Shown: piece by piece, positions 1-57,823 of the stretch
Layout: each line of letters starts with the position of its first letter
Numbering within the stretch: the first letter of the stretch is position 1
Origin: Paraphysomonas bandaiensis
Lineage: Eukaryota > Protista > Chrysophyceae
Direction: 5' to 3'
Length of the DNA stretch: 64,000 nt
Assembly: GCA_965644295.1 (NCBI GenBank)
Contig: CBFFRP010000370.1
Coordinates: 1-64,000 of the forward strand
The notes under the pieces: model-generated
Databases searched by the model: none
Told to the model about the DNA's origin: nothing
The model's input: only the letters and a program-made list of their open reading frames with translations
Program-made: the position numbers and the translations under genes

Positions 1-1140
1 CTTGGTAGGTGTTGACGCGAAGATCACCGTCGAGAGCAAGACGCTTCCTGCGTTCTGATTCAGCAAATGCGAGGATGTCCGCCCTGCTGAGTCGACCCCT
101 GTCGGCACTAACCATCAAAACAAACATTATGAAGGAGGAAATGTAGACAACTTACTCCTGATTCCGTGAAAATTCTTGTATTGCACAAAGCCACTTCTGC
201 ACATCTGCCTCATTATCTAGAACCCTCAAGGTGAACCAGAAGTTTCACCAAAAACTCAAATTGGTCAATGTCTTGTCCGGTGTAAAATGAAGAGTCGATT
301 GCCAGAGAGCTGCACATTGATATGAGTACAAGTAATCGCCACAGCAAAAGCGCACAGAACAACGTTGGATACCACTCCCAGTTAAAGATAACAAACGTGA
401 TGCGGTACAGCCATGGACATACCTTAAATTTTTGGACTTGTCCTCAATCGCTTGGATGCGGAGAAGTTCAAGAACTTCTATGCGCAATGCGCAAAGGTGA
501 CTAATGATGTTCATGACGGCCGTAATGAACGCCCATTGATACAGCAAAAGAAACACCTGTGAGCTAAACTTTTCCACCAGAGATCTGCCAAGATTTTAAA
601 ATCATCATGTATTAAATGAGTATGTCTTATACCTCTATCTGATGTGGAACTCTTAAGCGTCACACTGTAATAGAGTGCATCGGCAACTCTCCACTCCTCA
701 TTACCCATAAAAAAAAGTGTTCCGATACCCAATACAGAAATCATAGTAAGAGAAGGATAGATTAATCGATGTAAGTAAATAGATTGAAGTGATAGTGTAT
801 ATATTCCTTTATTATATCTATCAGTAGTAGCTCTCTTTGCTTTAGCACGAGCCATACCTACTTCAGTTATAATAAAACTACTTAATACATTAATTGTAAT
901 CATAATTCCAATAATTGTAAAGAAAGCAATAAATATCCGATAATTTGATGGTGTTTGACGGGCTGGTAGATGCCTCTCTTCCCACTGCAGTCATACATGC
1001 TGTAGTTAGTAAGAGAGACTCTATAAGTAACCAGTGTAGCTGATAATGAAAGAAATATATGCCTAATATGTTAGTAGATAATGATAGGACCTAAGATGAT
1101 TCGACGACGATTGATCCATGGGGTGTTTGATGATGTATAC
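1..1140 (-). pseudogene. Degenerate two-pore (TPK/K2P-like) potassium channel gene, partial and frameshifted
   Basis: ORF 511-903 has the TM plus pore-helix pattern 'GIGTLFFMGNEEWRVADALYYSV'. An upstream frame gives a second unit 'LGIYFFHYQLHWLLIESLLLTTACMTAVG', and downstream 'DIDQFEFLVKLLVHL' resembles the TPK C-terminus. No GYG filter is visible and the frames shift. Confidence 0.45.
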
Positions 1141-2408: not shown

Positions 2409-5400
2409 GTGTTATACAACTGTGTAGATGTATATGTTGTGTATGTGTATGTTGTGTATTGCTTCTGTGATGACCTATAATAGCTTCCGCCGTTTCTGAT
2501 CTTTCATGAAAGACGCAGCTATATACATTGTCTGAGAAGTGTTATACAACTGTGTAGATGTATATGTTGTGTATGTGTATGTTGTGTTTTGATGAAAACT
2601 TTATTTATATAATGTGTATTGCTTCTGTGATGACCAATAATAGCTTCCGCCGTTTCTGATCTTTCATGAAAGACGCAGCTATATACATTGTCTGAGAAGT
2701 GTTATACAACTGTGTAGATGTATATGTTGTGTATGTGTATGTTGTGTTTTGATGAAAACTTTATTTATATAATGTGTATTGCTTCTGTGATGACCAATAA
2801 TAGCTTCCGCCGTTTCTGATCTTTCATGAAAGACGCAGCTATATACATTGTCTGAGAAGTGTTATACAACTGTGTAGATGTATATGTTGTGTATGTGTAT
2901 GTTGTGTTTTGATGAAAACTTTATTTATATAATGTGTATTGCTTCTGTGATGACCAATAATAGCTTCCGCCGTTTCTGATCTTTCATGAAAGACGCAGCT
3001 ATATACATTGTCTGAGAAGTGTTATACAACTGTGTAGATGTATATGTTGTGTATGTGTATGTTGTGTTTTGATGAAAACTTTATTTATATAATGTGTATT
3101 GCTTCTGTGATGACCAATAATAGCTTCCGCCGTTTCTGATCTTTCATGAAAGACGCAGCTATATACATTGTCTGAGAAGTGTTATACAACTGTGTAGATG
3201 TATATGTTGTGTATGTGTATGTTGTGTTTTGATGAAAACTTTATTTATATAATGTGTATTGCTTCTGTGATGACCAATAATAGCTTCCGCCGTTTCTGAT
3301 CTTTCATGAAAGACGCAGCTATATACATTGTCTGAGAAGTGTTATACAACTGTGTAGATGTATATGTTGTGTATGTGTATGTTGTGTTTTGATGAAAACT
3401 TTATTTATATAATGTGTATTGCTTCTGTGATGACCAATAATAGCTTCCGCCGTTTCTGATCTTTCATGAAAGACGCAGCTATATACATTGTCTGAGAAGT
3501 GTTATACAACTGTGTAGATGTATATGTTGTGTATGTGTATGTTGTGTTTTGATGAAAACTTTATTTATATAATGTGTATTGCTTCTGTGATGACCAATAA
3601 TAGCTTCCGCCGTTTCTGATCTTTCATGAAAGACGCAGCTATATACATTGTCTGAGAAGTGTTATACAACTGTGTAGATGTATATGTTGTGTATGTGTAT
3701 GTTGTGTTTTGATGAAAACTTTATTTATATAATGTGTATTGCTTCTGTGATGACCAATAATAGCTTCCGCCGTTTCTGATCTTTCATGAAAGACGCAGCT
3801 ATATACATTGTCTGAGAAGTGTTATACAACTGTGTAGATGTATATGTTGTGTATGTGTATGTTGTGTTTTGATGAAAACTTTATTTATATAATGTGTATT
3901 GCTTCTGTGATGACCAATAATAGCTTCCGCCGTTTCTGATCTTTCATGAAAGACGCAGCTATATACATTGTCTGAGAAGTGTTATACAACTGTGTAGATG
4001 TATATGTTGTGTATGTGTATGTTGTGTTTTGATGAAAACTTTATTTATATAATGTGTATTGCTTCTGTGATGACCAATAATAGCTTCCGCCGTTTCTGAT
4101 CTTTCATGAAAGACGCAGCTATATACATTGTCTGAGAAGTGTTATACAACTGTGTAGATGTATATGTTGTGTATGTGTATGTTGTGTTTTGATGAAAACT
4201 TTATTTATATAATGTGTATTGCTTCTGTGATGACCAATAATAGCTTCCGCCGTTTCTGATCTTTCATGAAAGACGCAGCTATATACATTGTCTGAGAAGT
4301 GTTATACAACTGTGTAGATGTATATGTTGTGTATGTGTATGTTGTGTTTTGATGAAAACTTTATTTATATAATGTGTATTGCTTCTGTGATGACCAATAA
4401 TAGCTTCCGCCGTTTCTGATCTTTCATGAAAGACGCAGCTATATACATTGTCTGAGAAGTGTTATACAACTGTGTAGATGTATATGTTGTGTATGTGTAT
4501 GTTGTGTTTTGATGAAAACTTTATTTATATAATGTGTATTGCTTCTGTGATGACCAATAATAGCTTCCGCCGTTTCTGATCTTTCATGAAAGACGCAGCT
4601 ATATACATTGTCTGAGAAGTGTTATACAACTGTGTAGATGTATATGTTGTGTATGTGTATGTTGTGTTTTGATGAAAACTTTATTTATATAATGTGTATT
4701 GCTTCTGTGATGACCAATAATAGCTTCCGCCGTTTCTGATCTTTCATGAAAGACGCAGCTATATACATTGTCTGAGAAGTGTTATACAACTGTGTAGATG
4801 TATATGTTGTGTATGTGTATGTTGTGTTTTGATGAAAACTTTATTTATATAATGTGTATTGCTTCTGTGATGACCAATAATAGCTTCCGCCGTTTCTGAT
4901 CTTTCATGAAAGACGCAGCTATATACATTGTCTGAGAAGTGTTATACAACTGTGTAGATGTATATGTTGTGTATGTGTATGTTGTGTTTTGATGAAAACT
5001 TTATTTATATAATGTGTATTGCTTCTGTGATGACCAATAATAGCTTCCGCCGTTTCTGATCTTTCATGAAAGACGCAGCTATATACATTGTCTGAGAAGT
5101 GTTATACAACTGTGTAGATGTATATGTTGTGTATGTGTATGTTGTGTTTTGATGAAAACTTTATTTATATAATGTGTATTGCTTCTGTGATGACCAATAA
5201 TAGCTTCCGCCGTTTCTGATCTTTCATGAAAGACGCAGCTATATACATTGTCTGAGAAGTGTTATACAACTGTGTAGATGTATATGTTGTGTATGTGTAT
5301 GTTGTGTTTTGATGAAAACTTTATTTATATAATGTGTATTGCTTCTGTGATGACCAATAATAGCTTCCGCCGTTTCTGATCTTTCATGAAAGACGCAGCT

Positions 5401-8400
5401 ATATACATTGTCTGAGAAGTGTTATACAACTGTGTAGATGTATATGTTGTGTATGTGTATGTTGTGTTTTGATGAAAACTTTATTTATATAATGTGTATT
5501 GCTTCTGTGATGACCAATAATAGCTTCCGCCGTTTCTGATCTTTCATGAAAGACGCAGCTATATACATTGTCTGAGAAGTGTTATACAACTGTGTAGATG
5601 TATATGTTGTGTATGTGTATGTTGTGTTTTGATGAAAACTTTATTTATATAATGTGTATTGCTTCTGTGATGACCAATAATAGCTTCCGCCGTTTCTGAT
5701 CTTTCATGAAAGACGCAGCTATATACATTGTCTGAGAAGTGTTATACAACTGTGTAGATGTATATGTTGTGTATGTGTATGTTGTGTTTTGATGAAAACT
5801 TTATTTATATAATGTGTATTGCTTCTGTGATGACCAATAATAGCTTCCGCCGTTTCTGATCTTTCATGAAAGACGCAGCTATATACATTGTCTGAGAAGT
5901 GTTATACAACTGTGTAGATGTATATGTTGTGTATGTGTATGTTGTGTTTTGATGAAAACTTTATTTATATAATGTGTATTGCTTCTGTGATGACCAATAA
6001 TAGCTTCCGCCGTTTCTGATCTTTCATGAAAGACGCAGCTATATACATTGTCTGAGAAGTGTTATACAACTGTGTAGATGTATATGTTGTGTATGTGTAT
6101 GTTGTGTTTTGATGAAAACTTTATTTATATAATGTGTATTGCTTCTGTGATGACCAATAATAGCTTCCGCCGTTTCTGATCTTTCATGAAAGACGCAGCT
6201 ATATACATTGTCTGAGAAGTGTTATACAACTGTGTAGATGTATATGTTGTGTATGTGTATGTTGTGTTTTGATGAAAACTTTATTTATATAATGTGTATT
6301 GCTTCTGTGATGACCAATAATAGCTTCCGCCGTTTCTGATCTTTCATGAAAGACGCAGCTATATACATTGTCTGAGAAGTGTTATACAACTGTGTAGATG
6401 TATATGTTGTGTATGTGTATGTTGTGTTTTGATGAAAACTTTATTTATATAATGTGTATTGCTTCTGTGATGACCAATAATAGCTTCCGCCGTTTCTGAT
6501 CTTTCATGAAAGACGCAGCTATATACATTGTCTGAGAAGTGTTATACAACTGTGTAGATGTATATGTTGTGTATGTGTATGTTGTGTTTTGATGAAAACT
6601 TTATTTATATAATGTGTATTGCTTCTGTGATGACCAATAATAGCTTCCGCCGTTTCTGATCTTTCATGAAAGACGCAGCTATATACATTGTCTGAGAAGT
6701 GTTATACAACTGTGTAGATGTATATGTTGTGTTTTGATGAAAACTTTATTTATATAATGTGTATTGCTTCTGTGATGACCAATAATAGCTTCCGCCGTTT
6801 CTGATCTTTCATGAAAGACGCAGCTATATACATTGTCTGAGAAGTGTTATACAACTGTGTAGATGTATATGTTGTGTATGTGTATGTTGTGTTTTGATGA
6901 AAACTTTGTTTATATAATGTGTATTGCTTCTGTGATGACCAATAATAGCTTCCGCCGTTTCTGATCTTTCATGAAAGACGCAGCTATATACATTGTCTGA
7001 GAAGTGTTATACAACTGTGTAGATGTATATGTTGTGTATGTGTATGTTGTGTTTTGATGAAAACTTTATTTATATAATGTGTATTGCTTCTGTGATGACC
7101 AATAATAGCTTCCGCCGTTTCTGATCTTTCATGAAAGACGCAGCTATATACATTGTCTGAGAAGTGTTATACAACTGTGTAGATGTATATGTTGTGTATG
7201 TGTATGTGTATGTTGTGTTTTGATGAAAACTTTATTTATATAAAGTGTATTGCTTCTGTGATGACCAATAATAGCTTCCGCCGTTTCTGATCTTTCATGA
7301 AAGACGCAGCTATATACATTGTCTGAGAAGTGTTATACAACTGTGTAGATGTATATGTTGTGTATGTGTATGTTGTGTTTTGATGAAAACTTTATTTATA
7401 TAATGTGTATTGCTTCTGTGATGACCAATAATAGCTTCCGCCGTTTCTGATCTTTCATGAAAGACGCAGCTATATACATTGTCTGAGAAGTGTTATACAA
7501 CTGTGTAGATGTATATGTTGTGTTTTGATGAAAACTTTATTTATATAATGTGTATTGCTTCTGTGATGACCAATAATAGCTTCCGCCGTTTCTGATCTTT
7601 CATGAAAGACGCAGCTATATACATTGTCTGAGAAGTGTTATACAACTGTGTAGATGTATATGTTGTGTATGTGTATGTTGTGTTTTGATGAAAACTTTAT
7701 TTATATAATGTGTATTGCTTCTGTGATGACCAATAATAGCTTCCGCCGTTTCTGATCTTTCATGAAAGACGCAGCTATATACATTGTCTGAGAAGTGTTA
7801 TACAACTGTGTAGATGTATATGTCGTGTATGTGTATGTTGTGTTTTGATGAAAACTTTATTTATATAATGTGTATTGCTTCTGTGATGACCAATAATAGC
7901 TTCCGCCGTTTCTGATCTTTCATGAAAGACGCAGCTATATACATTGTCTGAGAAGTGTTATACAACTGTGTAGATGTATATGTTGTGTTTTGATGAAAAC
8001 TTTATTTATATAATGTGTATTGCTTCTGTGATGACCAATAATAGCTTCCGCCGTTTCTGATCTTTCATGAGAGACGCAGCTATATACATTGTCTGAGAAG
8101 TGTTATACAACTGTGTAGATGTATATGTTGTGTATGTGTATGTTGTGTTTTGATGAAAACTTTATTTATATAATGTGTATTGCTTCTGTGATGACCAATA
8201 ATAGCTTCCGCCGTTTCTGATCTTTCATGAAAGACGCAGCTATATACATTGTCTGAGAAGTGTTATACAACTGTGTAGATGTATATGTTGTGTATGTGTA
8301 TGTTGTGTTTTGATGAAAACTTTATTTATATAATGTGTATTGCTTCTGTGATGACCAATAATAGCTTCCGCCGTTTCTGATCTTTCATGAAAGACGCAGC

Positions 8401-11335
8401 TATATACATTGTCTGAGAAGTGTTATACAACTGTGTAGATGTATATGTTGTGTATGTGTATGTGTATGTTGTGTTTTGATGAAAACTTTATTTATATAAT
8501 GTGTATTGCTTCTGTGATGACCAATAATAGCTTCCGCCGTTTCTGATCTTTCATGAAAGACGCAGCTATATACATTGTCTGAGAAGTGTTATACAACTGT
8601 GTAGATGTATATGTTGTGTATGTGTATGTTGTGTTTTGATGAAAACTTTATTTATATAATGTGTATTGCTTCTGTGATGACCAATAATAGCTTCCGCCGT
8701 TTCTGATCTTTCATGAAAGACGCAGCTATATACATTGTCTGAGAAGTGTTATACAACTGTGTAGATGTATATGTTGTGTATGTGTATGTGTATGTTGTGT
8801 TTTGATGAAAACTTTATTTATATAATGTGTATTGCTTCTGTGATGACCAATAATAGCTTCCGCCGTTTCTGATCTTTCATGAAAGACGCAGCTATATACA
8901 TTGTCTGAGAAGTGTTATACAACTGTGTAGATGTATATGTTGTGTATGTGTATGTTGTGTTTTGATGAAAACTTTATTTATATAATGTGTATTGCTTCTG
9001 TGATGACCAATAATAGCTTCCGCCGTTTCTGATCTTTCATGAAAGACGCAGCTATATACATTGTCTGAGAAGTGTTATACAACTGTGTAGATGTATATGT
9101 TGTGTATGTGTATGTTGTGTTTTGATGAAAACTTTATTTATATAATGTGTATTGCTTCTGTGATGACCAATAATAGCTTCCGCCGTTTCTGATCTTTCAT
9201 GAAAGACGCAGCTATATACATTGTCTGAGAAGTGTTATACAACTGTGTAGATGTATATCTTGTGTATGTGTATGTGTATGTTGTGTTTTGATGAAAACTT
9301 TATTTATATAATGTGTATTGCTTCTGTGATGACCAATAATAGCTTCCGCCGTTTCTGATCTTTCATGAAAGACGCAGCTATATACATTGTCTGAGAAGTG
9401 TTATACAACTGTGTAGATGTATATGTTGTGTATGTGTATGTGTATGTTGTGTTTTGATGAAAACTTTATTTATATAATGTGTATTGCTTCTGTGATGACC
9501 AATTCCACCGTTTCTGATCTTTCATGAAAGACGCAGCTATATACATTGTCTGAGAAGTGTTATACAACTGTGTAGATGTATATGTTGTGTATGTGTATGT
9601 TGTGTTTTGATGAAAACTTTATTTATATAATGTGTATTGCTTCTGTGATGACCAATAATAGCTTCCGCCGTTTCTGATCTTTCATGAAAGACGCAGCTAT
9701 ATACATTGTCTGAGAAGTGTTATACAACTGTGTAGATGTATATGTTGTGTATGTGTATGTGTATGTTGTGTTTTGATGAAAACTTTATTTATATAATGTG
9801 TATTGCTTCTGTGATGACCAATAATAGCTTCCGCCGTTTCTGATCTTTCATGAAAGACGCAGCTATATACATTGTCTGAGAAATGTTATACAACTGTGTA
9901 GATGTATATGTTGTGTATGTGTATGTTGTGTTTTGATGAAAACTTTATTTATATAATGTGTATTGCTTCTGTGATGACCAATAATAGCTTCCGCCGTTTC
10001 TGATCTTTCATGAAAGACGCAGCTATATACATTGTCTGAGAAGTGTTATACAACTGTGTAGATGTATATGTTGTGTATGTGTATGTTGTGTTTTGATGAA
10101 AACTTTATTTATATAATGTGTATTGCTTCTGTGATGACCAATAATAGCTTCCGCCGTTTCTGATCTTTCATGAAAGACGCAGCTATATACATTGTCTGAG
10201 AAGTGTTATACAACTGTGTAGATGTATATCTTGTGTATGTGTATGTGTATGTTGTGTTTTGATGAAAACTTTATTTATATAATGTGTATTGCTTCTGTGA
10301 TGACCAATAATAGCTTCCGCCGTTTCTGATCTTTCATGAAAGACGCAGCTATATACATTGTCTGAGAAGTGTTATACAACTGTGTAGATGTATATGTTGT
10401 GTATGTGTATGTGTATGTTGTGTTTTGATGAAAACTTTATTTATATAATGTGTATTGCTTCTGTGATGACCAATTCCACCGTTTCTGATCTTTCATGAAA
10501 GACGCAGCTATATACATTGTCTGAGAAGTGTTATACAACTGTGTAGATGTATATGTTGTGTATGTGTATGTTGTGTTTTGATGAAAACTTTATTTATATA
10601 ATGTGTATTGCTTCTGTGATGACCAATAATAGCTTCCGCCGTTTCTGATCTTTCATGAAAGACGCAGCTATATACATTGTCTGAGAAGTGTTATACAACT
10701 GTGTAGATGTATATGTTGTGTATGTGTATGTTGTGTTTTGATGAAAACTTTATTTATATAATGTGTATTGCTTCTGTGATGACCAATAATAGCTTCCGCC
10801 GTTTCTGATCTTTCATGAAAGACGCAGCTATATACATTGTCTGAGAAGTGTTATACAACTGTGTAGATGTATATCTTGTGTATGTGTATGTGTATGTTGT
10901 GTTTTGATGAAAACTTTATTTATATAATGTGTATTGCTTCTGTGATGACCAATAATAGCTTCCGCCGTTTCTGATCTTTCATGAAAGACGCAGCTATATA
11001 CATTGTCTGAGAAGTGTTATACAACTGTGTAGATGTATATGTTGTGTATGTGTATGTTGTGTTTTGATGAAAACTTTATTTATATAATGTGTATTGCTTC
11101 TGTGATGACCAATAATAGCTTCCGCCGTTTCTGATCTTTCATGAAAGACGCAGCTATATACATTGTCTGAGAAGTGTTATACAACTGTGTAGATGTATAT
11201 GTTGTGTATGTGTATGTTGTGTTTTGATGAAAACTTTATTTATATAATGTGTATTGCTTCTGTGATGACCAATAATAGCTTCCGCCGTTTCTGATCTTTC
11301 ATGAAAGACGCAGCTATATACATTGTCTGAGACGT
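2409..11335 (+). repeat. 160-bp tandem array, ~56 units, each containing a C/D snoRNA-like gene
   Basis: Exact 160-bp period from 2461 to 6621, then units of 145, 153, 160 and 166 bp. 56 copies of GCTTCTGTGATGACC counted by eye. Confidence 0.98.
2461..11335 (+). ncRNA. Tandem cluster of ~56 box C/D snoRNA genes (~80 nt each; first copy 2461-2540) with two LSU rRNA guides (U34/snR62-type site and a helix 68-69 region site)
   Basis: First unit: stem GCTTC 2461-2465 / GAAGT 2536-2540; box C GTGATGA 2467-2473; D' CTGA 2496-2499; degenerate C' in ATGAAAGA; box D CTGA 2532-2535. The D' guide GCTTCCGCCGTTT pairs with conserved LSU AAACGGCGGGAGU. The D guide TATATACATTGT pairs with LSU ACAAUGUAGAUA with one mismatch. 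Confidence 0.85.
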
Positions 11336-11733
11336 GTTTATGAAGTTGCCATACTTTGTTTAATTTTTTTTTTTGTTTCTGCTGTTGTGCTAATTAATGA
11401 TTTTGTTGTTATCTTGTGGGTTTGAGTTCAGATTAGATACATACTATATTATCCTAAAACACTCAGTTCTATGTATAGCAGTACTTGTTCTAATTCTGCA
11501 ACTTTTCTCCAGACAGACTTATCATAGGAATAGCTGTTTTAATACACCAAAGACTGTATACTATGGAAACAATGTAATGAAGTAAAAGATTATTACAGGA
11601 GCCATATGTAAATCGTAATTCTGATTTAGATATTACTTTATTTGTAATATTCAACCACTGTACAAAACGTATACAATACACCGTGATTATCTACCATATA
11701 CATAGCCCTGAGGCATAAGATTTTAAAAATAAT

Positions 11734-14700
11734 CTATTTAAAAAAGCCCGGGCGAAGTATCCTAACTGCTCCTGAGCACCCGGGATTGCATACCTTCGGG
11801 TCTCCTTGTCCACCTTGTCCACTGACCCCACCGATCTTGTCCCACTCCCCAACTCCCACGGCTTCTGGAGGTGAGTGCTGCAAGCCTCCAGGCATGTTTC
11901 CGTCGCCGTGAATAATAATATGATCTCGGCACACTGGCAAATAAATATATGACGACCCGCCGCCGCCCCCGCCTCCAATGCCAGGTGACGTTCCGCCACC
12001 ACCTCCTCCTGCATATCCTCCACCTCCACCTCCTCCAAACTGCGAACCATTACCTCCTTGCCACATCTCACCTGGAGTCGCAGGAAAATCCGCATTGTGG
12101 ATACTTCCTGAGTCACCTGCGACCCCTCCTCGGTCTCCAATACCACATCCTCCGTTACGAACATCTATACGTGCGCCTGCAAGAGTTAACACAGTTATAC
12201 CCAATGGATCATATGTTATACAGCAGTACCAGGAAGTGGACCGTCCATTCCGCACCCAGGCACTCCATCTTGTGACCCACCTCCACCGCCACCGCCAGCT
12301 ACGACAATAACCTACACTATATACATTAGAATCCAGGCGATATCATCATGGGAGCATAGCAGAGTACAGCGCAACATTGGAGAGGTAAGACTAACCTGGT
12401 TCCCCTCCTTCGATCGCTTTGACACAATGCTATAACCCCCACCACCCCCAGCTGCCCATCTCCCCCCTCCACCATATCCCTCACCTCCTCCGGGAAGACC
12501 TCCCAGTGCAACGCCATACGTCGCATCTATGACGTCAAAAGATTTCACCACCTACACACAAATATAAGGAGTGGCAGAGTTTGATCAACAGGAGGTCTGT
12601 GTGCACCTTTTCATCGCCCTCTTCATTCTCGTCCTTCCTCGATGTAGTGACAGCCTCTAGCTCAGTACCATAAACTCCGGCCTGACCTCCCGCTCCAACA
12701 ACAACCTCCAATATATCATACGGACTGCAATTAATAAGAGCCTCACAAAAGGCTCCTCCTCCGCCAGACCCGCCCCTACGATCAAGAAATTGACCCGAAC
12801 CACCACCAGCACCCCAGGCCTGGATTTTGAGTTTGTTACATCTGGCAGGAACCTACACACATAAATTTACAATGAGCTCAACTGATAGATGTGCATATTG
12901 CAAGGGATGAGTACAATATGCATGTGTGGAGCAATGTAAACACCTTGTACACGTAGGTGCCAGGGACCACGTAAGTGGATATGCCTAAGCGCTCAATATG
13001 ATAGTCACGGTGCGCATCACGTTCATTCGCTTGCATCTGCGCGGCGCATAGGGATCCGTCAGGGTTACGCCAATTGCAACGAACCTGTGTACGAACATCA
13101 ATTTACAAACACAACTCCAGAACGCCTCTTGTTAAGATGTAAAGGGAATAGAGTTGAAACCAAACAGACCAAGAACATTAAGGTACTTTCAGTTTACAGA
13201 CATACAAATTCATGAATCTTGATCTCACCTGGCGATACATACATATCTCTTGCTCATGTTCTATTCGCTCTTCTTCAGCCTTGATTAGAGTCTCAACTGT
13301 CCCCCCAAACACCTCGCCACCTGATATACGAGTTACCATTCAACAGCTATATGAGTATATGTTTAATAGCTTACATCCAAGGCGGCACTCTATTGGCTTC
13401 GCTTCTCTCTTGACACACAATTCCTCCATGTGGTAGTCCAAAGTTTCCGCCATAACCCATTCCAGACACTGTCTAGGGCATGGCACAAGGCGTTTTGGAC
13501 ATTCGAGAGTCTCGTGATATTCCTGGTACGTCATAGGACCGGTGGGCTCGGGGCTTACCCCCGGTACAGAATTCGTTTGACCAGGGCCATTTCCCTGCAG
13601 ATTAAGCGAGTTGGCTTCCTCTTCTGCTTCAATATTCCGTTCCTTAATATATACAGTTAAACATATATTCGATACGATCGCATTACATTACACGTATTAA
13701 TTCTACTATATTTATAAGTAGCCATCATTTCTATAATAAGTCAACTTACTGGCTCATATTGTTCCAACCATTCGTCTTCTGTCAGTCTCTTCTTACAATC
13801 CAAAGGACATGACACTATACGCTTACTGCAGTAGTTAAGCTGATGATCCTGCTGCTCTTGACCCAACTTCACCCAATCTCCACATCCCCACTCACATATC
13901 ACCAGACCTGCCGGAAGGATGAGAGATATATTAGACAACCGCATGAAGGTATGCTGCCACAATACAAAACGGCTGAAACACTCCACTTTAAGTCATGCAA
14001 CGGCCAGAAAGCCCATACCTTTCTGCTGTCTAAGCATCGCAAAGTGCAGTTGTCGGAGTAACCGACGCCGGATAGAAGATCTCGGTGTAGTCATCAAATC
14101 TTCTTGCGTCCGCAATGTAGTCTGTATGACACAAAGTACGTAAGGTATAGCATTTCGTACAGAACAGAATATATCAATATTATGTCGACAACTTGCGCAA
14201 TAGTGAAGCACAATCACACCTCCATTATTCTTTCTCGTTCCTTCGTCAACTTTCGCTTGTCCAAAAGTACCTGTTTCATACTAAGACATGTTTATATATA
14301 AACGAAAGCACTCACATTTTGTGCGGCAGTTCGCTTTTCCATCAACAACTCCACTTCAAGTTTCAGGGTTAGGGAGCGCTGTAGACTAATAAGTTCTGAC
14401 TTGCTGAGCTTGAGCTTCCCACTATCCATATCTTTCATCATCTCCTGTATTCCTTCTTCTCTCTTTTTCAACATCACTACGTACAGTACAAGGGGTCAAA
14501 TCTAGATCAGCACATCACACGCCAAATATCGTTACCTGCATCTTTCTCTTCCCTAAGTTGCTCCGCCTCTGCACGAGACCTCATTATTCGAGCCCGCTCT
14601 AATTCTTCAGCAGTTGATGCGGACGACATTACACTCATATTAGACCCCTTCGAGACCACAGTCTTTTGTCGTTTGGTCATCTCAGCTTCCTGGCGCTTAC

Positions 14701-35988: not shown

Positions 35989-36420
35989 ATGCGAAAGACA
36001 ATAATATACATCGCAGTTAAGATGAGATGGAAGGGGCTTCAGACAACATGGCAGCATCTGATGGGTTCTTGCTTAAGGATCCCTTCTTCGGAGCAGTCGA
36101 TACCTGGTTCTAACAGATTCTGCGGCATTCATGCTTTAAGAAGAGACAAGCACAGGCAAGAACTTTGTATCGCCTGTATATTATGTGAAGCTGTATGCCC
36201 TGCAGTCGCTATCACTGTTGAATCCCAGGAAAGAGAAGACGGATCTCGAGACGCTGTTCTTTATGGAATTGATCTTTTTAAAATTAAAGTTGCCCTGTTG
36301 ATGCTATTGTGCAAACAAAACGTGCTGCTTTTGTCCTTGATAAGCGAGATACCACATCTTAGACAGACCCCTGATTTTAGCTCTTGGTGATCGTTACAAG
36401 CAAGAAGTTCAAGAAGATAG
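35989..36420 (+). pseudogene. nuoI: Bacterial-type NADH:quinone oxidoreductase subunit I pseudogene
   Basis: [38 protein letters not shown]...IDLFK. The second Fe-S motif is deleted; shifted frames continue [10 protein letters not shown] and [11 protein letters not shown]. Confidence 0.9.
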
Positions 36421-43556: not shown

Positions 43557-44580
43557 ACACACAGAGAGGCAGAGGGACCGGGGGGCGCTCTAAGCCGCTT
43601 AGGCATTCTTCCTGAGCCAGAAGGGCTCTCGTATCGTAATAAAACTTCGTTTTATTACTCTTTCCTTTTCACTCTATTACTCTTCCTTTCCACTCTATCT
43701 TTAAATATAATTATTATAGCTTATATAATTATATTAATAATACTATACTTTAAATAAAAATTAATTACTTTATATAATATTAAATAATTTTCTTATAATA
43801 TAATTAAAATTAATTACTTTATATAATATTAAATAATTATCTTATAATAAAATTAAAATATGATTTTGGCTTTTTGGCTTTCTGGCTTTTTGGCTTTTAT
43901 GAAAATTAGAAAAAGTTATAAAATAAAATTTATTATATAGTTTATGTTATAAAAAGCCAGTGCCATAATGCCAGTTGTGGTGGTGATGATGATGGTGGTG
44001 TTGTAACAGTGATGGTGATGATGATGGTGTTGTAACGGTGAATGGCACTGGATTTTTATAACATAACCATCACTGTTACAACACCACCATCATCATCACC
44101 GTTACAACACCATCATCATCACCATCACTGTTACAACACCACCATCATCATCACCACCACAACTGGCATTATGGCACTGGCTTTTTATAACATAAACTAT
44201 ATAATAAATTTTATTTTATAACTTTTTCTAATTTTCATAAAAGCCAAAAAGCCAGAAAGCCAAAAAGCCAAAATCATATTTTAATTATATTATAAGAAAA
44301 TTATTTAATATTATATAAAGTAATTAATTTTAATTATATTATAAGAAAATTATTTAATATTATATAAAGTAATTAATTTTTATTTAAAGTATAGTATTAT
44401 TAATATAATTATATAAGCTATAATAATTATATTTAAAGATAGAGTGGAAAGGAAGAGTAATAGAGTGAAAAGGAAAGAGTAATAAAACGAAGTTTTATTA
44501 CGATACGAGAGCCCTTCTGGCTCAGGAAGAATGCCTAAGCGGCTTAGAGCGCCCCCCGGTCCCTCTGCCTCTCTGTGTGT
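43557..44580. mobile_element. Non-autonomous foldback element (1024 bp, ~485-bp inverted arms)
   Basis: Termini ACACACAGAGAGGCAGAGGGACCGGGGGGCGC... and its exact reverse complement. The arms stay complementary through AT-rich and GATGATGGT sub-repeats. Both sides are flanked by GTATG. Confidence 0.88.
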
Positions 44581-44846
44581 GTATGTATGTATGTATGTGT
44601 TACGACCCGTGAGAAAAATGTGCCAGTCGATGAACTGGCAGTGCCAGTTCATCGACTGGCAGTTTTTGTCTATCACTCAAAAACCCACCAATGAAGTGAA
44701 CCCGTCAGTGAAGTGGCTTATCCAGCCGTGTTTTTTTTCGTTCCACCCACATAACCAGTGGATGAAATAGTTGATGATTATCGCTCAATGCAACAGCCTG
44801 ATAGTAATATAAGTGTAACATATATCATTGTATCAATCAAGAAGGA

Positions 44847-46622
44847 ATGACATCGGTGGTTGAAACTGTCTCGTCAGAGAGCACTGTACGACCAGAAGTT
44901 GCATCGTCAGTAGACGACAACACTAGATCTATCACTGATTCCATTGAAATTGAAGAACACAAACGACTGTTCTATCTGAATGCACGAAACGCTTTCGCAA
45001 ATTCAATTAAAATTTTCTCGCAGTCGAAATACCTTGAGATCGTCGAGTCGATGAAATCATTTGACTCCAAGCCTCATAGGAACCGCTCTTGTCTAGACTA
45101 CCGATGGCAGAGGTCATATATTCTGCTGCTGGTTCCTGATGATAAAGGTGAAAAAGCAATTTTGGTCCGAAGGAAAGATCACAGCGACGAAACTCAAGTG
45201 AAGGGAATGAGACGACTTGCTTATATTGAAGAGGTATTTGACATTATTCGGTATTGCCGTGTTGAAGAGGGAGGTCATACTGGACCTAGGGGAACCCACG
45301 AGGCTGTCGGCAGAAAGTATTCAAATATTTCTAGAGTTTTGTGTGAAATATTCTGCAAGTTGTGTACATGCGTTACTCAGAAGAAAATGTGTGCGAAACC
45401 GCAGGATCTGAAGCCTATAATTACTTCTTCGTACAATCAACGTGCCCAAGTTGACCTAATTGACATGCAAAGTCTTACATACGAAGGATACAAATGGATA
45501 TTGAATTACCAAGATCATCTCACAAAGTTTTGTTTACTGAGGCCTCTTAAATCAAAAGAAGCAGTACTTGTAGCAGATACTCTATACGATATCTTTATGA
45601 CTTTCGGTGCACCTATGATACTCCAGTCAGATAATGGTCGAGAGTTTGTCAATAAAGTTATAAAGGAACTGAAAGAAATCTGGCCTGCATTAGTTCTTGT
45701 TAATGGAAGGCCTCGGCATCCACAATCACAGGGTAGTGTGGAGCGCTCCAACCAGGATGTGAAAAAGCTAGTTCACAATTGGATGAGAGATAACAATTCC
45801 CAAGACTGGCCTCGTAGAGGACTATCTAAAGTACAGTTCCAAAAAAACAACAGATATCACTCCGGAATAAAATCTACTCCTTACATGCTGCTGTTTGGAC
45901 AACATCCTAGAAGAGGTCTTAGTGACCTACCATTCTCAGAAACGTTTCTAGCCAAAATCCAAACAGAAGAGGATCTAGAAGAGCTTGTAGCTAAGACACC
46001 TATGAATAATGTTATCGAGGGCCATGAACCAGAGGAATGTACAGTTGAGGCTTCAGCAAATGAGTCTGTTGCAGTATTGGTAAATGAGCACGGTGATACC
46101 CCATCAAGAGGGGCGAAACGTAAAGCAGCGAGTGCCGCACTAGCTGAACAAGGCGAAAGGATGAAAAGATTTTCCACATCTGGCACTCCAACCGATGAGG
46201 CGGAACTCCTACAGGTGGGTAGTGTTGTTTTAGTCAAACCACATCAGGTGGACCGAGGACAAGTTGATGCAATCAGGTTTCCAGCTGTTGTTGTTGAGGT
46301 TACCTCCAATGAATTACTTCGTCTGTACGCTCCCGGTGGGGTTCTAAACTCGTGTTATAACCGATCTGATCTGATTCACGAGCCGAATAAGACCCCTGCT
46401 TCATACCAACGTCATCTTGGAAACTATGAGAACTGGAGAAATTCGAAGACTATATCAGAGAGAGAAGCTGCAACTATGTTTTCTCCATCCCTCGGACAGG
46501 GGTTTAGTAAATGTAGTTGCAAGGGTAAGTGCAATAGTAATAAATGTGTGTGCAAGAAGAATGGATTTCTCTGTAACTCTAGGTGCCACAAAAGCAATTT
46601 GCTTGCGTGTTGTAACAAGTAG
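44847..46622 (+). CDS. DDE integrase-like transposase (591 aa) with H2C2-like region and C-terminal Cys-rich motif
   Basis: QVDLID, LQSDNGREF, PQSQGSVERSN; C-terminal CSCKGKCNSNKCVCKKNGFLCNSRCH. Confidence 0.93.
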   Translation: MTSVVETVSSESTVRPEVASSVDDNTRSITDSIEIEEHKRLFYLNARNAFANSIKIFSQSKYLEIVESMKSFDSKPHRNRSCLDYRWQRSYILLLVPDDKGEKAILVRRKDHSDETQVKGMRRLAYIEEVFDIIRYCRVEEGGHTGPRGTHEAVGRKYSNISRVLCEIFCKLCTCVTQKKMCAKPQDLKPIITSSYNQRAQVDLIDMQSLTYEGYKWILNYQDHLTKFCLLRPLKSKEAVLVADTLYDIFMTFGAPMILQSDNGREFVNKVIKELKEIWPALVLVNGRPRHPQSQGSVERSNQDVKKLVHNWMRDNNSQDWPRRGLSKVQFQKNNRYHSGIKSTPYMLLFGQHPRRGLSDLPFSETFLAKIQTEEDLEELVAKTPMNNVIEGHEPEECTVEASANESVAVLVNEHGDTPSRGAKRKAASAALAEQGERMKRFSTSGTPTDEAELLQVGSVVLVKPHQVDRGQVDAIRFPAVVVEVTSNELLRLYAPGGVLNSCYNRSDLIHEPNKTPASYQRHLGNYENWRNSKTISEREAATMFSPSLGQGFSKCSCKGKCNSNKCVCKKNGFLCNSRCHKSNLLACCNK

Positions 46623-47534
46623 TTGGTGCCATAGTAAACTACAAACTACTAATTAACCGAGTAGAATACAACCTTAACAAGTAACATGCATCTTATTTGC
46701 TACTGGTAGCATGAATCTTATTAGCAAGTAGTGATAAGCATCATCAGTACTTTAGCTCTAAGTACTTTAGTCGCTATTTACCTTAACATTGTGCCCACTG
46801 TCTGCAGATGATGATGATGATGTATGTCCTGCAGATGATATAAGTAATGAATAGAGTGTAAAAGGCCTATCACATAATAGTCATATTATTGAGTAGATCT
46901 TGATTCATAGAGCCGATATTCATAATAATACTATCCTTTCAAACATGGAATATGTAAAACCACAAGCATATACAATACAGAGCTCATAGTATAAAATAAC
47001 CCGATAGCTGGTTGCTACAAGTAACATGAATATTATTTGCTACTAGTGATATTACAGACCCCAACCACCAATGGGACCTACATCAATACATCCTCAGGCG
47101 AGACAGCACGTACGCTACACAAACGCAGCGAGACCCGCAGTATTGGACCCGCAGTGGAACGAGGCTCCCACGCAAACTCCATCGAATCCACACCCATAAC
47201 TCCCCTAACACTACATCTCTTTCCCAGACCGCATACGCGAAACGGTATGCGTCTGGAACAAATCCTATGTAATGGGAAGAAATCGATCCAAAGGCAAAAC
47301 CAGGAAAGACCAGACAAGAGCTGCCGCATGAACAGACTGTAGAATCACCAATCAGAGAATATGGCAAACCAAGTTAGTAAGACTATAGATATATACATAG
47401 ATTCTAGTCACAACCGTTCCCATGTAAAAATAAGATATTCTTATGTCTTATCCATGCTCTCATGAAGAAGGAAGTAGCACTGAAGAGGGATACAGATATC
47501 TATCTTGATACTGAAGGCTGGTATGTTGGAATAG

Positions 47535-48878
47535 TGTAAACCTGTGCAGGTTTAAAGCAGGTTTATCAGCACTATCCCCTATTCTATATGCTGGGCTGTG
47601 ATATATAATTCTTTTGAAGAGTTATTATTATTACAGTTTGGATGTATACATATATATATGCGTACATACTAACCTAGTTTCTCTCTTTCACCCACACATA
47701 TATGTATAGGTTGTGACCCTTCTACAGAATATATATATATGTTGTATCCTTACCCTAATATATGGTATATATGTGTACATGGCTCTATATTCAACCAGTG
47801 GCCTGTAAATGCACATATGTAGCTTCTACAATCACCTATAGTACGTAAACAGTGTATACGTGCTTTTCCTGCAGTCAGTGGATGCGTCTACGGCTTCTTT
47901 ACCGTTATTATGTGCCTCTGTGTGGTGCATATATCCAGTTCCAATTAATGGTGACTAAGGGTTTCCATAGACCGCCTCTGTCTGGAAGAAGGACCTGTAT
48001 ATCACCTGTCATGACTGTACGTACTGATTACATGATTTTACGGTACCTTCCATTTGATCATCACGCTGTGTGGACCCTCGTACTGATGCTGAACAGTCAA
48101 TATACTATATCGCTTCGTACTCTATATCGGCAATTGAAGAAGCAGTGGTCTTTAGCGAGTACAATGGTAATGCATCTCTGGACATATTGTTCAATTTTCA
48201 CGATAATCTGCTCGCTTATAAGTATGTTCGGTATGTGTGCTGCAATCACATTAAGGTGGCAGTTAGGAGCGACCTGCATCTCCTCTCAGCAACCGCACTG
48301 TATACCGTATATACTGTATATGATGTATTTGCAGTATTCCTCTATCGTATGTATGCGTCTATATCACTCGTAGGTATACAGTATCAGTATACTGTACCCT
48401 ACACTGTATAAATACAGGAAGCGAATACTGAACCAATGCTTTCCCTATTCTCAATGCTGATTGGTCGAGTGTCCATTATCGTTTAGATGAGCAGCAGTTG
48501 AGAGTGTATACGGCAGAGTCCATACATTAATGTGTAGAGTATGAAGAAGAAGAATTCTCCAAGAATATTCATAAATATCGTCACTCCTTCGCAGAAAATT
48601 TGGATTTAGTCACTGTGTGGCTGTCAACGCCCAAGCGCATCGTCATTCTTTTTAGTTAAGCTTGTTCTCTCTTTGTTGGTTGTTGTAGCTCGTCACTTTT
48701 CTGTTTAGTACTGAACTGCATAGCTGGTGAGTTGTGCTTTAGTTTCTTGGGGTGCCGAGAAGCATTTAGTACTGCAGAAGTAGTATAGGTTAATAATAAG
48801 CAACATTCTCTCTCTTAAAGCGAGTTTTAGCTTATTTAGAGTTTGGCTCTCAGGTCCCAACCCCTGAGTTCCATTGCA
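47535..48878. mobile_element. 1344-bp solo-LTR-like insertion in Ginger copy 1
   Basis: Absent from copy 2 (empty site GGAATAGCATC). Termini TGTAA...TTGCA, 4-bp TSD ATAG (47531-47534 and 48879-48882), no convincing ORF. Confidence 0.8.
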
Positions 48879-49089
48879 ATAGCATCTTGTGGGCTAATAA
48901 TCAGGAGCTCTTATGATTATAGTTATGAGATGCTGTCTGATGATATCATACGCTGGGAATCCGAGTGGACTTGCTGTATACTTGACTGTATTTCCCGTAT
49001 ATCGTTTCCTTTCAACATCATCAAACCAGTCGATGAACTGGCACCTGCCAGTTCATCGACTGGTTTATTTTTCTCACGGGTCGTAACAC

Positions 49090-49120
<31 letters not shown>

Positions 49121-50117
49121 TGTATGTGTTACGACCCGTGAGAAAAATGTGCCAGTCGATGAACTGGCAGTTTTTGTCTATCACTCAAAAACCCACCAAT
49201 GAAGTGAACCCGTCAGTGAAGTGGCTTATCCAGCCGTGTTTTTTTTCGTTCCACCCACATAACCAGTGGATGAAATAGTTGATGATTATCGCTCAATGCA
49301 ACAGCCTGATAGTAATATAAGTGTAACATATATCATTGTATCAATCAAGAAGGAATGACATCGGTGGTTGAAACTGTCTCGTCAGAGAGCACTGTACGAC
49401 CAGAAGTTGCATCGTCAGTAGACGACAACACTAGATCTATCACTGATTCCATTGAAATTGAAGAACACAAACGACTGTTCTATCTGAATGCACGAAACGC
49501 TTTCGCAAATTCAATTAAAATTTTCTCGCAGTCGAAATACCTTGAGATCGTCGAGTCGATGAAATCATTTGACTCCAAGCCTCATAGGAACCGCTCTTGT
49601 CTAGACTACCGATGGCAGAGGTCATATTGTAGGACTATCCACTTACATATAGAATATAATATATACGTGTACATGTCCTGTATTATATGATTAGTAGTAC
49701 AGTACTGTATTGTATACGTGTACCATGTAGTTAGGAATACAAACTGTAGGGAATGTGATTGTTGTTGGGATTAGCAATAGCCGTTGATATTGTAGACAGT
49801 ATAATTAGCCGTTGATATTGTAGACAGTATTATTCATGATTCATTATACGATAATAATCATTATTTTGTACTTCTGTACTTGGGTATTGCTTTGCACACA
49901 TACACATATGTATGCAAGCCCACAGTAATATTACTTAATAAGTAGTACTCAATCTCTGTGATATAACAATATTATGGGGGAAAGTAAGAGAAGCAAAATA
50001 AAAGCAGCTCCTCAAATAGAGGAATTGTTAGCTGCTTCGGGTTCTTCGTCTAAAAAGACGAAAAGAGAGAGAGAATCCTCTTGAAAACGAGCAAGAGATG
50101 CAACAACATCATCTCAA

Positions 50118-53100
50118 ATGCAATCTTCTCCTCAAACTGAAACATCAGTAGAGGCGGAAGGAGAATTGAGTGGAGTATCATTTCGTGAGCTCTCTTCTTC
50201 TCAACCAAAGAGAAAGAAGCAAAGGAGTGGAGATCCGCACCCCAACAGGAGTGAGCGCATTGACTTGAATGAAGTCATTGCAACGGAATCCACTCCACAT
50301 GAAGTAATCAATACCGACTCTATTCCCTACTTAGGTAGTGTGCAAGATGAGGATATCATCGAATTTTGTGAAAATCTCTCGAAAAGAGATCCTAAAGGGA
50401 CAAAATTCATAAGGTCAGAAATCATGGCACCAACAGTGCGTGATATGCTTCAGTTTCAGCGACAGCAGGATTTTGGAGATGAGTCTGACGAGGACTGGCT
50501 AGATCCTAACATTGTAACTACTGAGGAATTGATTCAGTGGTTAAAGCAAGCCTTTCTAGAGGAAGAGGAGCGATACTCTGATACATTGGAGCCTCTTCCT
50601 AGGTTCATAGATAATATCATTGGACCAAAAGTTAAGGTGGATATTCATGTTCCTAAAGTATTCTTAAAAGAATATGGACGTCTGAATGAGCTTTATAAGC
50701 TCATTCCGGAGGCAAGTCTCACAGAGGTAGCCTCGGATACCATAGTCAAAACCCTCAAGAAAAACATCAAACTTGTGGGCGGACATTCCTTCAGAAAGGA
50801 TGCCAAAGAGAAATTTATAGCGGATATAGGCCAAGGTCAATCTGCACCAAAAGATTTCGGAGCATTCTGTAGAAAGGTGCGAGAGCTTAACAATGACTAT
50901 AGTCAAGCTGTGAGAAAAGTAAAGAGGATGGAAACTAAATTGGATTCCAAAGAAACGTCTAAGTCTAACAAGTCTAAGACTACAAAAACTTCATCCTCCA
51001 GCTCATCCTCAAGTACTAAAGCAACAACTGATACTAAGGAAGCATGTTGGATATGCGGTAATCTTCATAAAGGTGACTGCACCCGCAAAACCTGTGCATG
51101 GGCTAACCATGAAAAGAAGCCATGGAAAGATTCCACACAGGGCAAAAAGTATGCGGCTATGGGTTGGAGTACCTGCCCTTATGTGGAGAATCCTGATGGT
51201 CCTCCGAGATCGAGAACAAGTAAGTTATCATGCCCTAAGTGTTTATATATAAATGCTATTGACATGAATAATGATATGCTCGATGTCTTTGTATGTCCTA
51301 AAGCTGATGTCAATGTACAACAGGTAAAGGAAAATCTAAGGGCTAAAGCCTTATTGGACACGGGGGCTACTGGGAATAATTTCATTAACCAAGAACTTGC
51401 TGATATGTTAGTTGCTAGGTATAATATTCCATTGCACGAGTGTAACATTAAAATTTGTAGTGCGCTTGATAATGCTTGTTGTAGTAGCAAGCAATATATG
51501 ATAATAACTATAAGATTAACTGATGAGTATAACAATACTCTTGATATTGAGTTGCAATGTTTGATAATAGATAGCACCTTTGATATCATAATTGGTAGAG
51601 AAACTATCAAGAAATATAGATTAGTTGATCATTTTCCATCTCACTTTATGGAAAGAGAGTTAGCAGGGAAAATGCTAGCTACGGCCGCGGGCCATGCTGA
51701 GAAGACTCAGCTTCTCTCGGAACATATTAGTGAGAGAGCCACATGTTATAATAACATGGAAACATTAAGGCGCCAAGCTAAGGAACACCTTAGTTATAAT
51801 AATAATTTACTTACAAGTAATAGCTTGGTTAGTACTATGTATTCACCTCCAATATCATCCATGCGTATAAGTGCATATGAAAAGGAAGATATAGGCGAGA
51901 TTAGAGATAACTATCTGGAGTCAATCCCAGAAGAAATAGTTACAAATACTCAGGAAAAAGTAGAAGGTACTACGTTACCAACTAAAATCTCTGGTCCCGA
52001 ATCTTTACAAAGGAGGGTGAGAGAAATCCATGAAATCTATAAGGATAGATTTAAAACCACAGTGTCGGAGATGCCAATGGATGTTCCACCTTTTGAATTA
52101 GAGGTAGATAGGGATGCCTGGGAACAACCAAAACATTGTGGTCCGCCACGAAAGATGGATCGAGTACGACAGTATGCTTGTAAAAAGCAAATCGATACAT
52201 TTGTGGAGCATGGAATAATACAACCAAGTACGGCTCCTTATTATAGCCAGGTATTATTAGTTCCCAAACCAAATGATAAATGGCGATTCTGTGTAGACTA
52301 TAAAGGTCTAAACAAGCACACACAGAGGGAACGTTGGCCAATACCTAACATCAAAGAAATGTTAGAACGTATTGGGTCTAAGAAACCCAAATACTTCATA
52401 ATTCTGGATTTAGTATCTGGTTATTACCAGGCTAAAATTTCAGAGTACTCGAGGAAGTGGACGGCATTTATAACCTTCTGGGGAGTATTCGAATGGCTCC
52501 GACTACCCATGGGTTTGAGTGGTGCTCCATCATACTTTCAACGAGTATTAACAACAATTGTGCTTGCCGGGTTGATTATGTTCATATGTGAATTATATCT
52601 AGATGACCTGATTATATATGCTTCTACAGAAGATGAACTAATTGAAAATTACGTTAAAGTTCTAGAACGCTTCAGGAAATACAATGTTTACATTAATCCT
52701 GAGAAAGTGAAAATAGGAGAGTCCGAAGTACAATATGTAGGACATACTCTAAATGAGGAAGGGTTACACTTTACTAGAGAACGTCTGGATAGTGTATTAA
52801 ATTTCCCAAAGCCTGAAACTATGAAGGGTCTAAAATCTTTCCTCGGATTGGCAAATTATTTTCGGGATCACGTGCACAACCACTCCTTAGTGGTGAGACC
52901 GTTAAATAAAATGCTTCTCAACTATCATAGACGTAAACGTCTACAATGGACAGAGGATGCCAATGAAGCATTTGAAAAGATCAAATTGATGATCCATGAA
53001 TGTCCAACATTATTTTTCATTGATGACGAGTCACCAATATATTTATTGACCGATGCATCTGATTATGGAATAGGAGCATACCTCTACCAAGTAGTAGATG

Positions 53101-53333
53101 GTGTAGAACGTCCAATAGGATTTCTCAGTAAAACATTCGATGAAAGAATGATGAATTGGGATACACCTCAGAAAGAAGGATATGCTATATACTATGCCTT
53201 AGATAAATGGGACTACCTATTAAGGTATAGATACTTTACGATCAAAACAGATCATAAAAATATTACTCAGTTGAGAACTGATTACGCTAAGGATAAGAAA
53301 GTTCAGCGATGGTTGAAATGTTTCCAAGCATAG
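50118..53333 (+). CDS. Gypsy gag-protease-RT-RNase H polyprotein, cut by an in-frame TAG
   Basis: CWICGNLHKGDC knuckle, LLDTGA protease, WRFCVDY / LDLVSGYYQ / YLDD RT and TDASDYGIGA RNase H. The frame continues past TAG (DYDLCDIKGSDNVVADAFSR) into the integrase. Confidence 0.93.
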   Translation: MQSSPQTETSVEAEGELSGVSFRELSSSQPKRKKQRSGDPHPNRSERIDLNEVIATESTPHEVINTDSIPYLGSVQDEDIIEFCENLSKRDPKGTKFIRSEIMAPTVRDMLQFQRQQDFGDESDEDWLDPNIVTTEELIQWLKQAFLEEEERYSDTLEPLPRFIDNIIGPKVKVDIHVPKVFLKEYGRLNELYKLIPEASLTEVASDTIVKTLKKNIKLVGGHSFRKDAKEKFIADIGQGQSAPKDFGAFCRKVRELNNDYSQAVRKVKRMETKLDSKETSKSNKSKTTKTSSSSSSSSTKATTDTKEACWICGNLHKGDCTRKTCAWANHEKKPWKDSTQGKKYAAMGWSTCPYVENPDGPPRSRTSKLSCPKCLYINAIDMNNDMLDVFVCPKADVNVQQVKENLRAKALLDTGATGNNFINQELADMLVARYNIPLHECNIKICSALDNACCSSKQYMIITIRLTDEYNNTLDIELQCLIIDSTFDIIIGRETIKKYRLVDHFPSHFMERELAGKMLATAAGHAEKTQLLSEHISERATCYNNMETLRRQAKEHLSYNNNLLTSNSLVSTMYSPPISSMRISAYEKEDIGEIRDNYLESIPEEIVTNTQEKVEGTTLPTKISGPESLQRRVREIHEIYKDRFKTTVSEMPMDVPPFELEVDRDAWEQPKHCGPPRKMDRVRQYACKKQIDTFVEHGIIQPSTAPYYSQVLLVPKPNDKWRFCVDYKGLNKHTQRERWPIPNIKEMLERIGSKKPKYFIILDLVSGYYQAKISEYSRKWTAFITFWGVFEWLRLPMGLSGAPSYFQRVLTTIVLAGLIMFICELYLDDLIIYASTEDELIENYVKVLERFRKYNVYINPEKVKIGESEVQYVGHTLNEEGLHFTRERLDSVLNFPKPETMKGLKSFLGLANYFRDHVHNHSLVVRPLNKMLLNYHRRKRLQWTEDANEAFEKIKLMIHECPTLFFIDDESPIYLLTDASDYGIGAYLYQVVDGVERPIGFLSKTFDERMMNWDTPQKEGYAIYYALDKWDYLLRYRYFTIKTDHKNITQLRTDYAKDKKVQRWLKCFQA

Positions 53334-53414
53334 GATTATGATCTATGTGATATTAAAGGATCTGATAATGTTGTTGCTGATGCATTTAGTAGACTATGTG
53401 CATTAGAATCTAAA

Positions 53415-54806: not shown

Positions 54807-55079
54807 TAACAAAGTTTACAGAATTGAGTGTCAATATAACACATTAACACATCAATTATAAGGGGAGGTAGTGTAGGACTATCCACTTACATATAGAATA
54901 TAATATATACGTGTACATGTCCTGTATTATATGATTAGTAGTACAGTACTGTATTGTATACGTGTACCATGTAGTTAGGAATACAAACTGTAGGGAATGT
55001 GATTGTTGTTGGGATTAGCAATAGCCGTTGATATTGTAGACAGTATAATTAGCCGTTGATATTGTAGACAGTATTATTC

Positions 55080-57792: not shown

Positions 57793-57793
<1 letters not shown>

Positions 57794-57823
<30 letters not shown>

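Follow-up and report, generated by a model that had tools for sequence, protein, structure and literature searches.

A ~9-kb satellite-like array of about 56 copies of a box C/D guide snoRNA gene with a predicted large-subunit rRNA target in Paraphysomonas bandaiensis

A ~9-kb "satellite" in the genome of the marine protist Paraphysomonas bandaiensis consists of ~56 near-identical head-to-tail copies of one gene that has the anatomy of a box C/D guide small nucleolar RNA (snoRNA). The array lies in the first 64 kb of contig CBFFRP010000370.1 (C370), the stretch of DNA hereafter called the window, and the 62.6-Mb assembly that contains it (GCA_965644295.1) was searched. The reading favoured here, and considered probable, is that one box C/D gene was amplified in place and that the array is transcribed from the plus strand as an unspliced polycistron, which is processed into guide snoRNAs.

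Tandem Repeats Finder (TRF) called the repeat at 2453–11338 with a period of 160, 55.6 copies and 97% matches; the onset of the repeat is already at 2408. Splitting at an anchor made of the terminal stem and box C delimited 56 plus-strand cores of 80 nt, stem included, from 2461–2540 to 11256–11335. The tandem array of ~56 units of 160 bp with 80-nt cores that had been proposed in a preliminary description of this DNA is thus confirmed by both approaches. Units measure 145, 153, 160 or 166 nt, mostly 160, and most of the length variants fall within the GU/AU-rich spacer, which spans 80 nt in the first unit (2541–2620). Fifty of the 56 cores are identical and four have point changes. The remaining two (9486–9558 and its twin at 10457–10529) combine a 7-nt deletion with a substitution in the guide upstream of box D', the calculated duplex energy of which is −12.4 kcal/mol compared with −22.3 kcal/mol for the intact guide. 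Twenty-five consecutive units (2621–6620) are all identical, the 3' half of the array is a mosaic of the four unit lengths, and one three-unit variant block is present twice, at 9154–9638 and 10125–10609.

The number of copies was assessed from sequencing runs, whose assembled contigs were compared over 1,501 bases of the locus. Run X17 is treated as DNA, as it keeps the introns of the neighbouring gene and spans the intergenic flank at a depth of 85; its word depth on the array reaches tens of thousands. Summed contig depth is no direct copy number. Corrected for the 30-nt overlaps between contigs, it corresponds to ~90–110 copies for 72–92 main-path contigs and to ~50 copies if the array is maximally fragmented, and the +6 variant alone accounts for ~20 copies, which brings the total to ~120. 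These estimates are rough, and the two-fold excess over the assembly could stem from ploidy, strain or collapse. Nevertheless, at least ~50 and roughly 90–120 real copies are indicated, which excludes the possibility raised in the preliminary description that only a few exist, and the array is therefore no assembly artefact. The only other match to the repeat unit in the assembly is the end of contig C458, which shows a 99.7% overlap with the start of the window and breaks inside the array, and hence is the same locus. This broken overlap, together with the run of 25 identical units, which polishing can produce, is what might be expected if a few copies had been inflated by the assembly. Given the short-read depth, including the ~20 copies of the +6 variant, and the mosaic of distinct units in the 3' half, such an artefact is barely credible; so is a fortuitous likeness to a snoRNA.

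The core exhibits the features of a box C/D guide (coordinates are those of the first unit). Box C (GUGAUGA, 2467–2473) stands in kink-turn (K-turn) register with the 5' stem strand (2461–2465), box D' (CUGA, 2496–2499) is perfect, and a degenerate box C' (AUGAAAG, 2506–2512) is assigned by its position 6 nt after D'. Box D (CUGA, 2532–2535) and the 3' stem strand occupy 2532–2540, and the terminal stem comprises four Watson–Crick pairs in K-turn register. Among 20,000 sequences obtained by dinucleotide shuffling of the unit, 7 (3.5e-4) had a box C, a box D and a 4-bp stem in this register, and one had the same layout with an additional internal CTGA. Every element named earlier as part of a canonical box C/D layout is present, and the core, with its ~80 nt and its guides upstream of D and D', is by its sequence a box C/D guide snoRNA beyond what chance would produce. 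What sets it apart from the class is its ~56–110 copies, as members are single- or low-copy (bioRxiv 10.64898/2026.07.28.739784).

Comparison with Rfam, which the preliminary description had proposed as a check, returned no match in the window at the gathering score, yet the top matches to the core below the cut-off were all C/D snoRNA models, aligned over the full length on the plus strand. The best was SNORD53_SNORD92 (RF00325) with 30 bits (E 5e-4) against a cut-off of 46 bits. The core is similar to this family in length and box spacing, whereas the guide sequences differ, and the match therefore concerns the scaffold only. The SNORD34 model gave no match to the core at E ≤ 10. Although a C/D guide by anatomy, the array snoRNA thus lies outside the catalogued families.

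The small-subunit (SSU), 5.8S and most of the large-subunit (LSU) sequence of the host's ribosomal RNA (rRNA) were located by pattern and recovered piecewise from fragments, with LSU model positions ~213–800 missing. The ribosomal DNA (rDNA) fragments reside on contigs C528, C545, C525, C196, C551 and C68 and are in many cases truncated, rearranged or joined to sequence resembling retroelements; they did not yield a complete rDNA unit. A stretch of 10–21 nt that is complementary to rRNA and lies immediately upstream of D or D' characterizes C/D guides. The D' guide (2483–2495) shows such complementarity, forming 13 bp with the host LSU (nine Watson–Crick pairs, a G:U, two Watson–Crick pairs and a G:U), and the pairing was matched or beaten by none of 300 shuffled guides and by 6 of 1000 shuffled LSUs. 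Among the SSU, the 5.8S and the part of the LSU that was recovered, a single site stands out as the best. Hence the 13-bp pairing with two G:U pairs and the LSU register described previously hold for the host's own rRNA. The low frequencies also argue against a chance likeness, being 3.5e-4 in the test of the boxes and under 1/300 in that of the D' guide. According to the fifth-nucleotide rule, by which C/D-guided methylation is placed from D or D' (bioRxiv 10.64898/2026.07.28.739784), the D' target is the G that precedes the conserved Am2256 by ten bases. No match to the guide strings was found in the literature searched. The D' guide is thus predicted to direct methylation of an LSU G that we take to be the equivalent of yeast G2246, a number obtained by counting from the yeast sites, and that is presumably located at the junction of helices H68 and H69.

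The guide upstream of box D (2520–2531) is marginal and redundant. It had been described as targeting the U34/snR62 site, and its fifth nucleotide indeed falls in exact register on the U equivalent to yeast Um1888 and human Um2837. The clean pairing fails, as eight Watson–Crick pairs are followed by a G·A mismatch and three further pairs; the host LSU has a G opposite the A at guide position −9, which breaks the duplex. With only eight contiguous pairs this guide alone falls short of the 10–21 nt of complementarity given above. Its duplex (−12.6 kcal/mol) was equalled by 29 of 300 shuffled guides (p≈0.1), and a better target for this guide might lie in small nuclear RNAs, transfer RNAs or LSU model positions ~213–800. 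The Um1888 site is conserved from yeast to human (Um2837), in plants (Um1892 in Arabidopsis) and in Dictyostelium (Um2170) (PMC8583080, PMC11542601, PMC8817022), and it seems unlikely that the D guide falls exactly on it by pure chance.

A separate, single-copy C/D gene in the same genome (G000:C553:649–729, minus strand) has a guide that pairs perfectly at the base equivalent to Um1888. It lies in a probable intron of an apparently short, non-coding host and consists of box C (GUGAUGC), a perfect 13–14 bp guide, a variant D' (CCGA), box D and a 5-bp stem, and its own D guide is without a clear target. The duplex with U1888 is calculated at −19.1 kcal/mol, compared with −12.6 kcal/mol for the D guide of the array. 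Rfam gave no score for this gene, and its orthology therefore rests on guide and layout. It is nonetheless a likelier U34/snR62 orthologue than the array, because its perfect guide is at D', as in the Neurospora orthologue CD22 (guide at D', 14/0; PMC2780460). The array snoRNA shares with U34/snR62/SNORD34 the U to which its D guide points, in the right register, and differs in having its guide at D rather than D', an internal mismatch and no SNORD34 match. The U34/snR62 identity suggested earlier is thus unsupported in its original form, as is the argument that both guides hit conserved rRNA, of which one strong guide and one marginal guide remain. The D guide of the array is most plausibly a second guide for U1888 that is redundant or in decay; a pair of guides for this site is known from Dictyostelium CD17/32 (PMC8817022). 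A 105-bp repeat at 94–98 kb of contig C370 that has 11 nt in common with the D guide was dismissed as a coding repeat.

Evidence on transcription comes from runs X1 and X3, in which the introns of the neighbouring gene are spliced out and which are presumed to be RNA. Each contains one 190-nt contig on the array, equal to a full unit, spacer included, plus 30 nt, which is what a closed loop of 31-mers would give. Such unit-through contigs fit an unspliced intergenic polycistron. Splice joints in the array were absent from the contigs of every run, where rare spliced forms could be missed. In loci of the SNORD115/116 type, one snoRNA resides in each intron of a spliced host and the units are of kilobase size. 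An organization of this kind, with each unit composed of a micro-exon and a snoRNA-bearing intron, could draw on the TAG and the two GTATGT motifs of the spacer. Yet no splicing at these motifs was seen, the RNA contigs read straight through the spacer so that no exon–intron structure emerges, the 145-nt variants are without either GTATGT motif, and the acceptor would be only ~22 nt past box D with no branch motif. Splicing of each unit is accordingly very improbable.

On either side of the array is a minus-strand gene, a divergent one that starts near 1140 and a convergent one that ends near 11679, and because of this intergenic location the array is not in a coding intron. Alternatively, the whole array might be contained in one 9-kb intron of a non-coding plus-strand transcript and be released from the debranched intron. 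GTATGT donors are available upstream, the array is followed by a CTAAT (11390) that resembles a branch motif, by a pyrimidine/GT tract and by AG dinucleotides (11425–11436), and the genome does have an intronic snoRNA array, on contig C146 (described below). Against this proposal, runs X1, X3 and X4 have no contig over the 3' intergenic flank (11185–11640), and hence no downstream exon was seen, although unstable host exons can be missed; moreover, a C>G change at 11390 in run X17 breaks the candidate branch motif. Release from a single intron is therefore regarded as quite improbable, though less so than splicing of each unit.

Several observations weigh against the polycistron interpretation. 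Run X4 has no contig on the array, and the contigs of the runs carry neither strand nor RNA ends. Carry-over of genomic DNA at 0.3–1.4× per single copy would yield the same X1 and X3 contigs; the sole counter to it is that a ~14-copy element at 11441–11484 is missing from these two runs. No promoter was identified for the array, and the two hairpins predicted in the spacer are weak (z about −2). The two units in which the D' guide is damaged have been retained, and there is therefore no sign that every copy is needed. No homologue of the array snoRNA was found outside this genome by a metagenome pattern scan or by synteny. Finally, methylation at the G2246 equivalent is not listed for Arabidopsis, other plants, human, yeast or Dictyostelium in the tables consulted, a comparison made without the Euglena and trypanosome maps; those for Arabidopsis list Gm2237 and Am2257 and nothing at 2247 (PMC8583080, PMC11542601, PMC8817022).

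Part of this evidence would also suit a snoRNA-derived satellite that was amplified neutrally, in which one, a few or none of the copies give mature RNA and the array is mostly passive DNA. The depth in the RNA runs is ~1× per copy or less and could be DNA carry-over, damaged copies are retained, the variation within the array reveals no clear protection of the core beyond spacer slippage, and, set beside the C553 gene, the D guide has a decayed look. On the other hand, 50 of the 56 cores are undamaged and share one sequence, the D' guide is preserved, the assembly contains no further locus of the unit except the overlapping contig end, and the ~14-copy neighbouring element does not appear in the RNA runs. 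That snoRNA genes have repeatedly become the units of tandem repeats here, as on C146, would also be hard to explain if satellites arose at random. A mostly passive satellite is on balance unlikely.

If the array is a polycistron, it would be transcribed on the plus strand, probably by RNA polymerase II, from the 1.2 kb that it has in common with the divergent gene upstream. Cleavage within the GU/AU-rich spacers followed by exonucleolytic trimming, as in plant, algal and trypanosomatid clusters (PMC7671301, PMC6562600), would release RNAs of ~75–80 nt protected by Snu13, Nop56, Nop58 and fibrillarin. The D' guide would then direct 2'-O-methylation of the G2246-equivalent G, and U1888 would be served mainly by the C553 gene, with the D guide as a weak backup at best. 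One protein encoded in the genome has two RNase III domains, and another is a weak candidate with a single such domain; as clues to processing, these proteins and the spacer hairpins are no more than a lead. Unequal crossing-over or gene conversion would enlarge the array and keep it homogeneous, and selection on its exact size is probably not tight. The recurring variant blocks, together with a spacer G>A at 11027 that is present in the X3 contig, fit such concerted evolution.

The flanks of the array contain several further features. The divergent upstream gene (1–1140, minus strand) encodes a membrane protein that is two-pore K+ channel-like by eye and has no Pfam match. The neighbour-gene exons were searched singly, and the first exon of this gene gave no relatives, longer kin being outside the reach of this search. 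Its frame (903–1140) is open in C458 and interrupted in C370, which suggests small sequencing errors near the start of the C370 contig. A (CATA)n microsatellite found by TRF, one of several in the window, lies between this gene and the array at 1567–2212. Between the microsatellite and the array, ~90 bp before the latter, stands a single-copy, perfect 17-bp inverted repeat (2271–2319; folding z −7.9) with a short run of T behind it, and an imperfect hairpin at 2331–2376 has closely spaced C-like and D-like motifs. The 5' flank was considered as a mobile element, which was rejected as it is single copy, and as an H/ACA RNA, the layout of which does not fit by inspection. On the 3' side, 11441–11484 is a 44-nt piece of a repeat with ~14 copies by X17 depth, and the convergent downstream gene (11679–12430, minus strand) contributes its 3' end with a Gly-rich last exon that is spliced in the RNA runs. 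Contigs that hold relatives of this gene had no such snoRNA nearby. The metagenome pattern scan gave 29 matches, none with the terminal stem or the D guide and many in GC-rich coding DNA, which were read as chance.

Elsewhere in the window, an open reading frame (ORF) at 35989–36390 resembles NADH dehydrogenase subunit I. A foldback-like element at 43557–44580, beside a TATG tract, is a perfect 485-bp inverted repeat with a 54-nt loop and internal AT-rich repeats, and an AT-rich palindromic element at ~4190–4560 of L015 resembles it. Two copies of an integrase-type DNA transposon with terminal inverted repeats of 46–48 bp occupy 44594–57796 and are flanked by TATG tracts; a long terminal repeat (LTR) retroelement (ORFs at 50118–54806) lies between or within them.

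The array can be compared with other repeated snoRNA genes. Canonical rRNA guides are single- or low-copy, and the mammalian arrays are orphan, imprinted and brain-enriched, with dozens to hundreds of copies (bioRxiv 10.64898/2026.07.28.739784). The C370 array resembles SNORD115/116 and SNORD113/114 in having dozens of tandem C/D genes in variable copy number, and it differs from these orphan, imprinted loci in being rRNA-targeting by prediction, in its 160-bp unit and in showing no splicing. Intergenic clusters of polycistronic snoRNAs are a standard arrangement in plants, algae and trypanosomatids, and those of plants, Chlamydomonas, Ostreococcus, Euglena and trypanosomatids are like the array in being intergenic and in presumably yielding single snoRNAs from one precursor; unlike the array, they mix different snoRNAs or a few isoforms (PMC7671301, PMC6562600). 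In its 56 or more repeats of one nearly identical sequence, the array is also akin to a small rDNA or 5S array. No paper on such snoRNA arrays in stramenopiles was found in the literature search. With its 160-bp unit, its single repeated sequence and a guide predicted to target rRNA, the array is a new form of known snoRNA arrangements.

A second array occurs in the same genome at ~171,380–172,100 of contig C146 (minus strand), where seven tandem copies of a different C/D-like snoRNA with a 112-bp period lie in an intron. The host gene looks TM9SF/endomembrane protein-like by eye. The D' guide of this snoRNA matches the LSU stretch around the equivalent of yeast U2189. Tandem arrays of snoRNAs seem to be a genome-wide habit, of which the C370 array is one instance, and this habit would be more notable than the C370 locus alone. 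A tentative extension, for which less than even support is claimed, is that the lineage keeps housekeeping rRNA guides as rDNA-like homogenised arrays in which copy number sets dosage, C370 being the unspliced intergenic single-sequence form.

The D' guide of the array predicts an LSU methylation site that is unreported in the tables compared. If the dosage proposal is true, the C370 array supplies a high guide dose for this methylated G at the H68/H69 junction, and its snoRNA might also chaperone folding there; a Leishmania C/D snoRNA is reported to bind and reshape H68 (PMC13487219). The locus also illustrates that genes for small RNAs can be lost from view when repeats are masked as "satellite" DNA. 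The array seems to vary among strains, which offers a basis for a copy-number and dose test, and a compact array with a testable rRNA target would allow the path from copy number through RNA dose to methylation to be tested directly.

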